NCBI GenBank assembly: GCA_037447605.1
Contig: CM074805.1
Coordinates: 4,373,361-4,437,360 of the forward strand
Direction: 5' to 3'
Length of the DNA stretch: 64,000 bases
Source of the DNA: Zygnema circumcarinatum SAG 698-1b
Lineage: Eukaryota; Plantae; Zygnematophyceae
Shown: piece after piece, positions 17,010 through 27,617 of the stretch
Position numbering within the stretch: position 1 is the stretch's first letter
Layout: the number at the start of each line of letters is the position of its first letter
Notes under the pieces: model-generated
Seen by the model: the letters and a program-made list of their open reading frames with translations, nothing else
Database searches by the model: none
Told to the model about the DNA's origin: nothing
Program-made: the position numbers and the translations under genes

Positions 17010-19108
17010 ATGTCAGAGTTTTGCACGCGTGGCAAATCGTGGTTGGCGCTCGATGAAGAGGAGGGTAGCCTTAAGGCCGTTTCCTTCAGACCTCTTCTTC
17101 AGTCCGCCATGGAGACGCTGCTCGCGGCGGCATCCATGGAGGGCAGGCTAGCGGTCCTCTCGGAGGGGAGGGCTTACTCCTATGGCGCCCTGCTCCGTCT
17201 CTCGCGGCAGCTGGCCCTTGAACTTGGAATCCAAAGCGCGCCTCCTCTCCCGCCCTCTGCACCCTCCAGGAGCACATCTCCACAAACCCTAAAATCTGTT
17301 GGAAGTGAGAGAAGCCTCGCCGCGGCTTGTGGATATGGAAGGGGTCCTTCTTCTGCATGGCTGCAACCATGGCGTGACGCCCTTGGTTGTCTGCATGCTG
17401 AGAGGCACCTACATCTCTGTCTTGCACAGCGCAGAGCTGGATTCTCACTTCTTCCAGGGAGTGTTGATCCACTTGAATTATATGGAAGAATAGAAGCAGC
17501 TGGTATTGCTAGCAACAACTTCGTAAGAGCAGACGTGGCCCTTCGTGGCAACCAGCCGCACTTTAGAAGGGGGCAGAGCACATTTCCTGCACTTGATGGC
17601 CCCAGGGTTGGGATCTATGCGGAGCCAACTGTGCAGTTCGTATCTGCCCTTTGGGCCACGTGGCGTGCAGGAGGAGTTGCCGTCCCATTGGCAACATCAC
17701 ACCCTGATGCCGAACTCACACATGTTTTGCGCGATGCGGTGCGCTTTCAGAGCTTCTTTACTAACATTATTGTGTTATCTTTGCGCAAAATTTCCCTATG
17801 TAAACCGCGTGAACCAAAGAGAGCGCTTCTTTCGTATCGCATCGATGCATTCATGGTAGTTGTCGCCCAAGAAACGCTGAACTTGATTTCAAGGTTTTTT
17901 AAGCGTAGAGTCTGAAATGTGAGGAGTACACTTCAAATGAGTTCAGCGTGGTAAATTTAGGGTTCAAGGCCCTAAACAGCCGACGGAGTGGATGCGGTAA
18001 TGGGTGCGTGGTCCTCGGGACCCTTCACAGGTAGAAAGCGATGATTGATATGCTTTTCTCCGATTCAAGTTGCAACACTTAACACTTTAGCTTATGCTAA
18101 CGGGTTTACAAAAAAATAGGAGCACTTGCGCTTGAGTTCAATGTAAAGCCAATGCTGTCACCCACACAGCAGATTGAGCATGACCTAATCACCATTGGCA
18201 TCTCACCGAAATATTGCATTGAGCATCCGATGTGACAAGCATTTGGATTTCGGTGAAAGAGATTCCTGTCTTTCGCGTGCATAAATCAGTTTTCATTTGC
18301 TCAATGGAAAGTTGGGAGCTAGTTTCCTGGATGTTCCAAGTAAGTCTGCCTAAATATGGCGTCATAACTAGTTCTCTTGATTCTAAATTGCAAACGCCTT
18401 CCTTTCTCCTTCAACAGGCCGTGCATTACTTATTGGCGGGGTGTAGTTGAGGTTTCGGTTGAACTGCTTTTGGCTCATCGTATCATTTCAACAATTATTT
18501 CGAACTATTCAAAAAAATAACATCAATGTATTCTTTAACCTTCTCTAAGGCCAGTTCCTTTTCCTTCCCCCGTCAGGACTCGCCAATACTCGAGAAACGG
18601 TCAACGGTGTCTAGCAAGCTTGGTTTCACCCTCTGCCATTCAATGAAATGACATTCAATTCATTAGGAAAGATTAACGATTCATACACGGCCGACCTTTT
18701 CCAGAGCCGTACATCTCCCTGCTGGATCACACCATAGCACTTCCCTGCTGTTACATAAACAGACATTTCCTTCTCATCCCTGCTTGTACGACAACCTCAC
18801 CCAGAAGCTTAGAAGTTTCTCCCCATGGGTGCAGGATGTCTCCATAGTGGTGGCCCCAGAAGCTCAGCGAAACCGACTCAAAAATCTCTCTGAGTCCTGC
18901 AATGCTCGCTTTGTGGGGCTGCCCCCTCTCACCTGCACAGCGTCCAAACTTCTGCAAAAACATGACAAGCCCTCTGTGGCGAGCCTCATGGTGAACTGCC
19001 CCCCCCCAGGTGGGGGCACACCTCTCGACAAGCTATACCATCTTTCTATGTGTTGTCGCTGGATTGCTTCTCTCTGCTTCTGCTACTCGCCCCGATAGCA
19101 CAAACAGG

Positions 19109-19145
<37 letters not shown>

Positions 19146-20678
19146 CAACTGTGGGAGGGCTTCTGGGGCTCCACTTCTCATATCTTCATATCTGCGTTGT
19201 TGCATGATGACTTCTGCCAACAGATGGGCAGTCGGCAGCCATGATCGTGTACACGAGTGGGACGACAGGACGGCCGAAAGGGGCTGTGCATACTCACTGC
19301 AGCCTTGCAGCACAGGTGGATTGCATCGCTCCGGAGCCATAGTGAAGGGATGGTGCAGAGGAGAGTGAACAAAGTAGGAAGGTGCATGGGAGTTTGGCCA
19401 TGCATCCATCATGGTATGGCTGACTTGGGCATGCATGCATGCATGGCCAGGCCGAGATGATAGGGGAAGCGTGGGAGTACTCCCCAAACGACTGCATGCT
19501 GAACTGCCTTCCTCTGCACCATATCCGTTTCCCATTTGAGAATCGCTTTCATGGAAATAGAATAACGGTAAATGTAACCATGCATAGTCCAAACAAGCCC
19601 CAAGTTCAGTTCAATTGTTGTTTCTTTTTCTGCCTTTTGGTTTGGAATGGCAACATGCTGTGAGAAATTCTGACAGCGAAGTGTACAACTTTGATACTTT
19701 TCTTGGATTCAAGCTCCGTTCTTTAACACATAGAGAACATGTCCATGGAGCCATGAACGCCCTCATTGCTCCTCTCTCAAGTGGGGGCTCGGTAAGCAGG
19801 CCAACTTTCTCAACTCCTTTTCCTTCCTTTCACATTGACTTAGTATCACATCATCCCTAGAGACATCAATTCCATTTTAAGCTTGTTTTCATTCGAATGC
19901 ATCCGTTGAATCCTCGTCTTTATGTTTTGTATGCATGATGACCTAACAGTGGCTAAAACCCTGATGGACTGAACCCTTTCTCTTGTTTACCAGGTGGAGT
20001 TTATGCCCAAATTCAGCCCTAGCAAAGTGTGGGCGAGATGGAGAGAGTCATATCCAGAAGACGAATCTCCTCAGAAAAATGCCATAACAATGTTCACAGG
20101 GGTGAGCCTGACACTATAAGTCACGTCTGTCACGTTTGTTATGTTGAAACAATTTTTGCTCTGAACGTCCCAAGTTTGAAGAGAAGAGAATTCAGTTGAG
20201 AATTCGACTGTTGTGAACTTGATAATTTGTGGGTTTTGTTGATTGTCCTTCATGCTGACGCTATGGGAGAGCAGGTCCCAACCATGTATGTCCGCCTCCT
20301 TCAAACCTACGATGCCATGGGAGAGAGGGAGAAGGAGGCCTCCTCTCGAGCGGCTCGGAAACTGCGACTAATGGTGAGGTCAAACTGCAGACTGAGCTGC
20401 ATAGAACTTGGTGCTTTTCCTTTCATGAGCTCCTGGAGAAGCTTCTCAACTGAGGGTTCCATGGGCGGTTTCTTATTGAATTGGTGAAGTGGAGGGAGGG
20501 AGAGAGGGAGAGAGGGAGGGAGGAGAGGAAGGTGTGTGTGTGGTGACAGTCCTCCAAGTGTGGTGCAGATGTGCGGCTCTGCTGCTCTTCCAGAAGTTGT
20601 GATGGAACGGTGGGAGGCAGTAACAGGCCACCGGCTGCTGGAACGATATGGCATGACTGAGGTGTGGTGCCCTCTCTC

Positions 20679-20740
<62 letters not shown>

Positions 20741-22309
20741 GCCCTCTCTCTCGCTCGCTCTTTCCTCTCTCTCCCCCCTCTCTCTCCTACCCCCCGACTC
20801 CTCCCACACTCCCTCACTCCCATGATTATGGGTGGGGGCAGCTTGGCATGGCACTCACGAATCCCCTGCGAGGGGAGAGGCGGCCCGGACACGTGGGAGG
20901 TCCCTTTCCGGGAGTGAAGGTGCCGCTGCTCTCCTCCCACTCTGCTGCAGGAGAGGGGAGGAGAGAGGAGAGAGAGGGCCAGAGAGTAGGAGAGAGTGAG
21001 GTCTCGGTTTATCTGTGCTATTCTTTCTGAGACGAGATGATTCAAAAGTGCAGTACTTTCTCAGTATGTAAATGTACGTTCACTCTCAATTTCGGAGCCT
21101 GTTTGTTTCAGGTCCAAGTTATTCCCGAAGATGGGAGGGAGGAGGGAGAGCTAAGAGTGCGGACCTCCGGCATGTTTCGTGAATATTGGAGGAGGCCTGA
21201 AGTGAGCAAGGTTTCTTGCCAGCCTCGATGAGAAGATCACAAAAAACATGAAAAGATGTTTTCCTTGTTATAACAAAATACCCAATTGCAGGCAACTTTT
21301 GTCCTGCCAGTTTACAAGGGAGAGGGATGGGCCAGACAGGCAACTAAAGAAGCATTCGACGAAGAGGGTTTCTTTCTTACAGGAGATGCGGTGAAAGTCG
21401 AAGATGGGTACTTTCGAGTTCTAGGAAGTAAGCATTCTCGATGCGTCGAATCCCCTCAATGCACCATGGTTGGCATCTTCATATAGCCATGGATGAAGTT
21501 AAAGTTGAATGTGATGCTGTACTCATGCTGCTGTGAAAGGGAGGGGTTCAGGGCGGAGTGTTGATATCCTTAAGAGCGGTGGGTTCAAGGTTTCAGCTCT
21601 TGAGATCGAGGCAGCTCTCTTACAGGTGCGTAATTGTCACTTTTCCTGCAACTTGAGGGAGCACAGAGGAGGAGAGTTTTGTCCTTTCGGATATCCCAAT
21701 AGAGACAGACGTAACCAGCGGCTTTGTGTTTACAGTATGCTGCTGTGTTGTGCCTTCTTGCAGCATCCCTTAATAGCAGAGTGCACAGTGGTAGGAGTGG
21801 CGGATGAGGAGTATGGCGAGAGAATAGCGGCAGTGGTGGCCCTAAAGGAGGAGGGAGGAGGGGAGGCCTCACAGCAGAAATTGGACTTGGAGGGACTCCA
21901 AACATGGGCATTGGAACGCATGGCTCCCTACAAGGCATGGCACCATTTGGGCATGAACATGGCCATGAACACATGCATGAACATGAACAATGCTCGGTTA
22001 CAATGAAAGGGTAACGTTTTCTGTGTTGTCCCGTCTGTTGGGCGTTCAGTTGGTGTGAACACGTGGCTCTCTTTTGCAGGTCCCTTCTGTGTTGAAGGTG
22101 GTCGCCAGCATTCCCCGAAATGCGATGGGCAAGGTGGGTGGGGCCTAAAACCCTTCAAACCCTAAAGGTGGCACGTGCTGCCCATGTTACTGAACGTGTG
22201 GAAGGTGAAGGTGGGTGCTGATTTTTCGGGCCTGAAATAATTTCTTTTTGGGGAATTGCAGGTGAATAAGAAAGAGGTTCTGCGAGATCTGTTCGGGCAG
22301 GGGATGTGA
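17010..22309 (+). CDS. AAE13: Malonyl-CoA synthetase / acyl-activating enzyme 13 (AAE13, ACSF3-like), 15 exons
   Basis: Exons 17010 (or 17109)-17738, 18835-19009, 19224-19315, 19451-19520, 19739-19791, 19994-20101, 20275-20373, 20569-20661, 20842-20919, 21112-21201, 21340-21427, 21552-21625, 21764-21934, 22080-22133, 22262-22309. Motifs: YTSGTTGRPKG, EAWEY, LPLHHVHG, VEFMPKFS, WRESYP, GHRLLERYGMTE, DILKSGGFKVSALEIE, PRNAMGKVNKK. Confidence 0.93.
19521..19738 (+). other. U12-type (minor spliceosome) AT-AC intron in AAE13
   Basis: 5' end ATATCCGT, branch-site-like TTCTTTAAC at 19719-19727, terminal AC at 19737-19738. Removing it restores the conserved LPLH-H-VHG exactly. Confidence 0.85.
21935..22079 (+). 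other. GC-AG intron in AAE13
   Basis: AAG|GCATGG donor and TTTTGCAG acceptor join MAPYK to VPSVLKVVASIPRNAMGK, collinear with AAE13 homologues. Confidence 0.75.
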
Positions 22310-24559: not shown

Positions 24560-24920
24560 CCGCTCTCCCTCACTTCCACCCTCGCTCTCTCCCTCTCCAA
24601 CTCCCTCTGCTTCTCTCTCTCCCACGCTCTCCTCACTTTTCTCCCCCTCTCCCTCTCCACTCCCTCTGCTTCTCCCTCTCCCCCTCTCCCCCGCTCTCCC
24701 TCACTTCCCTCCCCCTCTCCCTCTCAACTCCCTCTGCTTCTTCCTCTCTCTCTCCCCTCCCCCTGCTTCTTCCTCTCTCTCTCCCCTCCCCTCCCCTCCC
24801 CTCCCCTCCCCTCCCCTCCCCTCCTCTCCCTCTCCCTCTCCCTCTCCCTCTCCCTCTCCCTCTACCACTCCCTCTGATTCTTCCTCTCCCTCCCTCCCCC
24901 TCTCCCTCTACCTTCCGCTT
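24560..24920. repeat. Polypyrimidine low-complexity tract including (CTCCC)n and (CTCTCC)n
   Basis: Directly visible C/T-only runs upstream of the F-box ORF. Confidence 0.9.
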
Positions 24921-26212
24921 GGCGCATGACCGCACTGTGACGTTTTTCATGACGGCAGACTAGGGATGGCCCGCGTTATAAATTCCGAATATATTATATA
25001 ATTTACAACGGGTTTAAAATTAGTAATATATTACAAAGTAAAACACTTTATTACATATATTATACCCACTCGTTTTGAACAATTAACGACCGTACGACCG
25101 TACTCGTACGGTCGTACCATACCAAAATTAGGTCGTTTTGGCGTTGGCGTTGCGAAATGCGTTCGTCTGGTTTTTTCTGTCTGCTCGTGCTCGGGCCGCA
25201 AAATACCGTACAGTCGTACGACCGTACATGTTGTAAAGGCGTTGTAAATTAATATATATCAGCCGTTATCTATTCGTCACAGTTGTATAATATAATATAT
25301 AATATATAATCGTAACTAATCCATGTCTGCCGGGCAGACACAACAAATCGATTGCTCTGCGTGGCAGAAAGTAATTCAGCGCCGTCAGTGCCGTCCGATC
25401 GAACCTTTTTCAGCCGTCGATGTCACGTGTTAAAGATGGAAAAGATTCAAGATCCGTTCGATCGATTTTGCGTCCGCGCGTGCGCCGAAGTCTGGGATCG
25501 AAGTCAAGGGGCGAATATAAAGAGAGAAGATGAGGGACGGAGAGAGCGCGTGGCAGAGAGGGAGTGACGGGTCGCCGAGAGGGAGGCTAGAGAGGAGCTG
25601 ACCTGAAATGTAGACTTTCTAGAGAATCTTAATAATATTGCACAGAAATTGAATCTTACAAGGAGGCCGAATAAAGTAAATATAACTATGTAATCGTTTA
25701 ATACGATTCTGTTTGTTTACCTGCTGTAATTTTTTAGTGCAGGGGGCTTTTCTAAGGGAAACCCTAGAAAAAAGTGGTGGGTTATTGGAGAAAAGGATGT
25801 GAACTCGTATAGGAGCTGTTTGAGGAACGGCAGAAGGAGGGGGAGTTGCTGCAGAGCAAGGTCTGGCTGAACGACCGCTCATAATGCTTAGTCTTAATTC
25901 TTTTTTTAATAAAATAAAAACATTTCCTGTTCCCTGAAAGGTCCTTGTTTGCTATCATTACTTGTGTGCCAGCTGTAAGGGCTTACTCTCGCGCCGAATT
26001 TAACTGCAGACTGAGCTTCAAGACGAGTTTCAACGAGTGGGAGAGAGAGTTGGATGATTATTTAAAATGGAGGAGAGGCCTCCCAACTTTTTTCTGGGGC
26101 TGTTGGGGCTTTTGTGGTTTTCCGCATTTTTTGGGTTTTTGGATTTTATCTTCATGATAGTGAGAGATTCGGAGAAGCTGAAGGTGTTGAGGGTTGAACT
26201 TGAGGAAGAGGA
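24810..26212 (+). repeat. ~1.4 kb direct duplication, copy A
   Basis: Repeated at 26223-27617. ORF-track offsets are 1413 bp before and 1405 bp after an 8-nt indel (GACCGTAC at ~25220-25227, present only in copy A). Confidence 0.95.
24961..25340. mobile_element. AT-rich palindromic MITE-like element (also duplicated at ~26374-26745)
   Basis: Begins with hAT-like TAGGGATGG. Internal 12-bp inverted repeat (24999-25010 / 25240-25251), a perfect hairpin GTACGACCGTAC-TC-GTACGGTCGTAC (25092-25117) and a GTCTGCC-G-GGCAGAC palindrome at the right end. The right TIR and TSD are not cleanly resolved. Confidence 0.4.
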
Positions 26213-26222
26213 NNNNNNNNNN
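26213..26222. other. Assembly gap (10 N)
   Basis: N run between the two duplicated copies. Confidence 1.
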
Positions 26223-27617
26223 CCTCCCCTCCCCTCCTCTCCCTCTCCCTCTCCCTCTCCCTCTCCCTCTCCCTCTACCACTCCCTCTGATTCTTCCTCT
26301 CCCTCCCTCCCCCTCTCCCTCTACCTTCCGCTTGGCGCATGACCGCACTGTGACGTTTTTCATGACGGCAGACTAGGGATGGCCCGCGTTATAAATTCCG
26401 AATATATTATATAATTTACAACGGGTTTAAAATTAGTAATATATTACAAAGTAAAACACTTTATTACATATATTATACCCACTCGTTTTGAACAATTAAC
26501 GACCGTACGACCGTACTCGTACGGTCGTACCATACCAAAATTAGGTCGTTTTGGCGTTGGCGTTGCGAAATGCGTTCGTCTGGTTTTTTCTGTCTGCTCG
26601 TGCTCGGGCCGCAAAATACCGTACAGTCGTACATGTTGTAAAGGCGTTGTAAATTAATATATATCAGCCGTTATCTATTCGTCACAGTTGTATAATATAA
26701 TATATAATATATAATCGTAACTAATCCATGTCTGCCGGGCAGACACAACAAATCGATTGCTCTGCGTGGCAGAAAGTAATTCAGCGCCGTCAGTGCCGTC
26801 CGATCGAACCTTTTTCAGCCGTCGATGTCACGTGTTAAAGATGGAAAAGATTCAAGATCCGTTCGATCGATTTTGCGTCCGCGCGTGCGCCGAAGTCTGG
26901 GATCGAAGTCAAGGGGCGAATATAAAGAGAGAAGATGAGGGACGGAGAGAGCGCGTGGCAGAGAGGGAGTGACGGGTCGCCGAGAGGGAGGCTAGAGAGG
27001 AGCTGACCTGAAATGTAGACTTTCTAGAGAATCTTAATAATATTGCACAGAAATTGAATCTTACAAGGAGGCCGAATAAAGTAAATATAACTATGTAATC
27101 GTTTAATACGATTCTGTTTGTTTACCTGCTGTAATTTTTTAGTGCAGGGGGCTTTTCTAAGGGAAACCCTAGAAAAAAGTGGTGGGTTATTGGAGAAAAG
27201 GATGTGAACTCGTATAGGAGCTGTTTGAGGAACGGCAGAAGGAGGGGGAGTTGCTGCAGAGCAAGGTCTGGCTGAACGACCGCTCATAATGCTTAGTCTT
27301 AATTCTTTTTTTAATAAAATAAAAACATTTCCTGTTCCCTGAAAGGTCCTTGTTTGCTATCATTACTTGTGTGCCAGCTGTAAGGGCTTACTCTCGCGCC
27401 GAATTTAACTGCAGACTGAGCTTCAAGACGAGTTTCAACGAGTGGGAGAGAGAGTTGGATGATTATTTAAAATGGAGGAGAGGCCTCCCAACTTTTTTCT
27501 GGGGCTGTTGGGGCTTTTGTGGTTTTCCGCATTTTTTGGGTTTTTGGATTTTATCTTCATGATAGTGAGAGATTCGGAGAAGCTGAAGGTGTTGAGGGTT
27601 GAACTTGAGGAAGAGGA
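26223..27617 (+). repeat. ~1.4 kb direct duplication, copy B
   Basis: Matches 24810-26212 by eye apart from the 8-nt indel. Only this copy continues into the 27472-28302 ORF. Confidence 0.95.

Follow-up and report, generated by a model that had tools for sequence, protein, structure and literature searches.

A gene on the + strand of the window, the 64,000-nt stretch of Zygnema DNA analysed here, very probably contains a phase-1 intron of the U12-type AT-AC class at positions 19521..19738, within the LPLHHVHG motif of a predicted AAE13 orthologue, and we infer that the junction 19520/19739 is used. The intron is 218 nt long, starts with ATATCCGTT, and interrupts the codon for the second His of the motif. 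Exon 4 ends with ...CTG CAC C at 19520 and exon 5 begins with AT GTC CAT GGA at 19739; once 19521-19738 is removed, C and AT together form the His codon. The first-pass annotation had placed an AT-AC intron in this motif, and the letters, read directly, bear it out, since removal yields exactly LPLH-H-VHG.

The gene is of the AMP-binding family and extends over 17109..22309 in 15 exons. To place them, a bacterial malonyl-CoA-synthetase-like protein (P0002) and the Brassica oleracea malonate--CoA ligase (P0141, XP_013638270) were aligned with the window by tblastn, and the splice borders were then read. All exons lie on the + strand: exon 1 at 17109-17738, exon 2 at 18835-19009, exon 3 at 19224-19315, exon 4 at 19451-19520, exon 5 at 19739-19791, exon 6 at 19994-20101, exon 7 at 20275-20373, exon 8 at 20569-20661, exon 9 at 20842-20919, exon 10 at 21112-21201, exon 11 at 21340-21427, exon 12 at 21540-21625, exon 13 at 21764-21934, exon 14 at 22080-22133 and exon 15 at 22262-22309. 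Their lengths total 1935 nt, a multiple of 3 that corresponds to 644 codons and a stop (TGA). Exon 4 (70 nt) codes for AEMIGEAWEYSPNDCMLNCLPLH plus base 1 of the next His codon, and exon 5 (53 nt) completes this codon with bases 2 and 3 and continues with VHGAMNALIAPLSSGGS; GTAAGC follows directly 3' of the exon. Exons were searched singly, and the segments of exons 4 and 5 were joined by script only for listing junction peptides.

The other 13 introns of the gene comprise 12 GT-AG introns, with a purine at +3 and CAG or AAG acceptors, and one GC-AG intron. The latter, intron 13 (21935-22079), can only be read as GC-AG, AAG/GCATGG ... TTTTGCAG/GTC, because homologues have ...MAPYK joined directly to VPSVLKVV... 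and no frame-keeping GT donor lies between the two. Exon 1 carries a long insert that is weakly conserved relative to homologues, and an in-frame GT...AG pair there (17304-17429, 126 nt) could be an extra intron. Two microsatellites lie in introns of the malonyl-CoA synthetase gene, namely (GA)n at 19100-19142 (intron 2) and a long (CT)n at 20670-20760 (intron 8). Elsewhere in the window, 24900-25600 and 26190-26970 are near-identical, with the same open frames about 1.4 kb apart, and lie on either side of a run of N near 26200; a repeat or a duplication introduced during assembly could account for them.

Several comparisons bear on what the gene encodes. In the exon translations, Pfam places AMP-binding (PF00501) on exons 1, 3 and 8 and AMP-binding_C (PF13193) on exon 13. 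Among all proteins fetched, P0141 gives the highest tblastn total against the window; the solved structures closest to P0141 are the MatB malonyl-CoA synthetases 4fuq and 3nyq, and its top NCBIfam model is NF005702, malonyl-CoA synthase, with a score below the model's cut-off. Bacterial matches in the protein searches are named malonyl-CoA/methylmalonyl-CoA synthetase. Protein word searches, covering the 327-aa frame of exon 1 and the bacterial-homologue alignments and exon rows, yielded only bacterial MatB-like proteins, with bacterial matches crowding the lists, and a PDB search with the read-through frame that spans exon 4 gave no match. On the Pfam domains, the best match to P0141 and the MatB and malonyl-CoA synthase relatives of that protein, the predicted product is a malonyl-CoA synthetase of the AAE13/ACSF3/MatB type, and the gene the streptophyte orthologue of AAE13.

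The signals within 19521-19738 are those of the minor class. The 5' splice site (19521..19528, + strand) reads ATATCCGT and matches the consensus ATATCCTT at 7/8 positions, with the core from +1 to +6 intact and G at +7. The branch-site motif (19720..19727, + strand), TCTTTAAC, matches 7/8 of TCCTTAAC, with T for C at the third base, and lies within TTCTTTAAC at 19719-19727. Its candidate branch adenosines, 19725/19726, are 12-13 nt from the last intron base, 19738. The spacer ACATAGAGAAC between motif and intron end is purine-rich; the intron ends with ...GAGAAC, and with the purine-rich ACATAGAGA just before the terminal AC (19737..19738, + strand), a pyrimidine tract is lacking. The first-pass annotation had put the branch motif 11 nt before the terminal AC: 11 nt is the distance to the last intron base with AC included, and the gap between motif and AC is 9 nt. 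The 5' splice-site core, the branch motif, the short distance from branch to 3' end, the lack of a pyrimidine tract and the orthologous U12 introns described below all agree with a U12 AT-AC intron. The earlier assignment to the minor spliceosome is thereby upheld at the sequence level, with perfect U12 AT-AC orthologues in Carnegiea and Vanilla. The G at +7 should weaken pairing with U11/U6atac, and the mismatch in the branch motif should act likewise.

Single motifs of this kind also occur elsewhere in the gene. The perfect 5' consensus ATATCCTT is found at 21564-21571 within coding exon 12, in the codons for VDILK, which shows that the 5' motif alone can arise by chance in this gene. A second TTCTTTAAC lies at 18531-18549 in intron 1, with an AG 10 nt after the motif; this copy is probably due to chance, because no RTATCC donor is present upstream within intron 1. 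Over the window, the frequency per position is 1.7e-4 for ATATCC and 1.5e-4 for a motif that differs from TCCTTAAC by at most one base and lies 8-14 nt ahead of an AC. Protein homology fixes both borders, and the probability that the 5' and 3' signals coincide with them by chance is about 2.6e-8.

The major spliceosome might nonetheless process this AT-AC intron, as U2-type AT-AC introns are known. According to PMC3584512, terminal dinucleotides do not set the class of an intron, and U12 introns are defined instead by the 5' splice site and branch site, with an optimum branch-to-3' splice site distance of 11-13 nt. The 5' site here is ATATCC, a U12 branch motif stands 12-13 nt from the end, a pyrimidine tract is absent, and the angiosperm orthologues carry a perfect TCCTTAAC, so that we consider handling by the U2-type machinery very improbable. 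In U2-type AT-AC introns, the 5' site resembles GTAAGT, except that +1 is A.

Other borders were considered by enumerating, with a script, all in-frame, stop-free GT-AG, GC-AG and AT-AC pairs around the site. Among the resulting 82 pairs, only 19521/19738 restores LPLHHVHG with the 41-residue spacing of the homologues; the motif is exact in 191/216 fetched homologues (those of >=400 aa). One pair, the GT-AG intron 19527-19735, would be removed by the major spliceosome, leaving three extra residues. It is in frame and stop-free, but its donor, GTTTCC, has T at +3, against a purine in all 12 GT donors of the gene, and its GAG acceptor has no pyrimidine tract. As the first-pass annotation had stated, this pair inserts IQH (the enumeration yields LPLHHIQHVHG) and uses a weak acceptor, the other acceptors of the gene being CAG/AAG. 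The insertion would disrupt a motif that is contiguous in those 191/216 homologues, and the orthologues have no GT at this offset, yet keep ATATCC...AC. We therefore regard removal of 19527-19735 as a very unlikely event. GC donors usually take the form AG/GCAAGT. A GC-AG intron at 19516-19733, also in frame and stop-free, would give a product of equal length with LPLEHVHG; its donor, CT/GCACCA, is far from the usual form, a His kept in nearly all homologues is swapped out, and orthologues do not conserve the pair. The probability of this splice is close to nil.

The first-pass annotation had suggested comparing the position and type of the intron among orthologues, and this comparison supports the AT-AC intron: a phase-1 AT-AC intron is present at the identical codon position in Carnegiea and Vanilla. 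Plant and algal proteins, none of them from this species, were reached by a full protein search with exon 6 alone, and the genomic loci encoding them were then compared; the ENA contigs L007 and L008 were left out of the intron comparison, as the relevant exons are beyond their reach. Against ATATCCGT, with TCTTTAAC 11 nt from the intron end, in the 218-nt Zygnema intron, that of Carnegiea gigantea (L003, 2346-2463; 118 nt) begins with ATATCCAT and has a perfect TCCTTAAC 11 nt from its end. The intron of Vanilla planifolia (L004, 4419-4648; 230 nt) begins with ATATCCAA and has a perfect TCCTTAAC 9 nt from its end. In both plants, it is flanked by exons of 70 nt and 53 nt, as in the window.

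ATATCC...AC ends are also common to Closterium sp. Yama58-4, Closterium sp. NIES-64 and an algal Logan contig (L006, from SRR24319165), and AC directly precedes ATGT in 4/4 algal copies. In Yama58-4 (L005), the 5' end is ATATCCGCC and 529 nt separate it from the first copy of exon 5. NIES-64 (L002) has the same 5' end, with ATATCCACC in the last repeat copy, and an intron of 500-874 nt, depending on which 5'-end repeat copy is chosen. The Logan intron (245-583; 339 nt) begins with ATATCCTC and has CCTTAAC 34 nt from its end. Across the copies seen, the bases at +7/+8 are GT, GC, AC, TC, AT and AA, which is off consensus in every copy. The earlier description of the +7 G as a non-consensus variant thus holds as far as the consensus is concerned, but the base is no special feature; since +7/+8 vary among orthologues, it represents tolerated variation.

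The 3' regions are less uniform. No branch motif of good quality at the canonical distance was found in the three other algal loci (near the 3' end in both Closterium strains, and in Logan L006), so that ATATCC...AC ends alone are no guarantee of a textbook 3' region. In both Closterium strains, the only good U12 branch motif is a perfect TTCCTTAAC, with AC 12-13 nt later, about 250 nt upstream of the exon. These loci are also repetitive: in Yama58-4 (L005 3860-4490), exon 5 and its AC border occur in tandem, three copies (3891, 4056 and 4436) being intact and a further one decayed. In NIES-64 (L002 3370-3790), a unit of about 124 nt that includes the last part of exon 4 and the first bases of the intron, ATATCC, is present four times. 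In the Logan contig (L006 100-600), exons 3 and 4 are fused, and CCTTAAC at 34 nt is well past the usual branch distance.

In Brassica oleracea (L001, XP_013638270), there is no intron at this position: a single fused exon of 123 nt encodes an uninterrupted LPLHHVHG, and both neighbouring introns are retained. The shared position, flanking exons and ends indicate that the intron is orthologous across streptophyte algae and flowering plants. On these comparisons, it is old, no younger than the ancestor that flowering plants share with these algae, and Brassica has lost it precisely.

It had also been claimed that AT-AC introns are often mis-annotated, and the plant database entries agree with this. 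The deposited models from the cactus Carnegiea (P0124), from Vanilla (P0125 and P0162), from artichoke (Cynara, P0153) and from soybean (Glycine max, P0127) lack the exon on each side of the AT-AC intron, and the predicted proteins pass from ...AQ or ...SQ straight to VEF.PKF or beyond. Two pea models begin just past the AT-AC intron, and the deposited angiosperm AAE13 models that skip the flanking exons or start just after the intron also include P0165 and P0166. The omitted exons are intact in the Carnegiea and Vanilla genomes. Another pea gene, that of P0164, has a span of 1362 nt for 432 aa and keeps a spliced LPLHHVHG; from this span, it looks like an intron-poor retrocopy.

These models could be taken to mean that exons 4 and 5 are normally skipped, or that this copy of the gene is decaying or goes unspliced, in either case with no functional AT-AC splicing. 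Skipping of 123 nt does keep the frame, and exactly these two exons are skipped in several plant gene models. These models are predictions, however, and in Carnegiea and Vanilla both exons are intact in the underlying genomes and separated by a perfect U12 intron. In the window, all 15 exons are open and homologous over the whole protein, with their total of 1935 nt, and the encoded protein is conserved in the motif region. We thus give very little credence to a decayed locus or to routine skipping.

The minor spliceosome consists of U11, U12, U4atac/U6atac and U5. In Zygnema, the U11/U12 di-snRNP would recognise both the 5' ATATCC and TCTTTAAC, which lies 12-13 nt from the 3' end, and 19520 would be joined to 19739. 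As described in PMC3584512, this di-snRNP binds the 5' site and the branch site jointly, and either A of the motif may serve as branch point. According to PMC11347168, all sampled streptophytes, including Chara, have minor introns and the corresponding snRNAs, and Chlorophyta do not. An Rfam scan of the 64,000-nt window found no minor snRNA or other RNA family. A literature search combining ACSF3 or At3g16170 with U12 returned nothing relevant; ACSF3 was not found in the accessible portion of the supplements of Olthof et al. 2019, a catalogue of minor-intron genes, nor in the text of PMC7507305.

If exons 4 and 5 were skipped, 123 nt would be lost in frame and the protein would have no LPLHHVHG. 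With a U12 intron inside the motif, a full-length enzyme that bears the motif would need minor splicing, and it can be soundly inferred that enzyme output would depend on the minor spliceosome. A further and rather improbable idea is that the intron may act as a slow-splicing gate, with output tracking minor-spliceosome activity and failed recognition giving the in-frame, motif-less isoform without exons 4 and 5. This idea draws on the retention of the intron in a catalytic motif from zygnematophyte-grade algae to angiosperms, with +7/+8 off consensus throughout.

The significance of the intron lies in annotation and in its use as a marker of minor splicing, and knowledge of how U12 introns work is left unchanged. 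For gene models, a predictor limited to GT-AG introns skips or truncates the 41 residues that hold the catalytic motif, and the cactus, vanilla, artichoke, soybean and pea models in the databases already show such loss. For minor splicing in this algal lineage, it provides one well-supported marker intron. If Arabidopsis shares the Brassica loss, U12 catalogues based on Arabidopsis would miss the intron.

Compared with known systems, the algal protein has in common with bacterial MatB (PDB 4fuq, 3nyq) and ACSF3 the AMP-binding fold and an LPLHHVHG-type motif; the bacterial MatB genes have no introns, and the enzyme activity of the algal protein is predicted from sequence. The malonate--CoA ligase gene of Brassica belongs to the same protein family and has the same neighbouring intron positions as the Zygnema gene, but it lacks the U12 intron and has one exon of 123 nt in place of exons 4 and 5. 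The AAE13 introns of Carnegiea and Vanilla agree with that of Zygnema in codon position, phase, flanking exon sizes and ATATCC...AC, and differ in having a perfect TCCTTAAC, A at +7 and lengths of 118 and 230 nt, as against 218 nt. Relative to typical U12 AT-AC introns, the Zygnema intron, predicted from sequence, has G instead of T at +7 and T for C at the third base of the branch motif. It shares with the U12 AT-AC introns of plants and animals the ATATCC core, a TCCTTAAC-like branch motif 12-13 nt from the end, the AC terminus, the lack of a pyrimidine tract, a non-zero phase and long-range positional conservation, and by its sequence it is a well-behaved, ordinary member of this known class.
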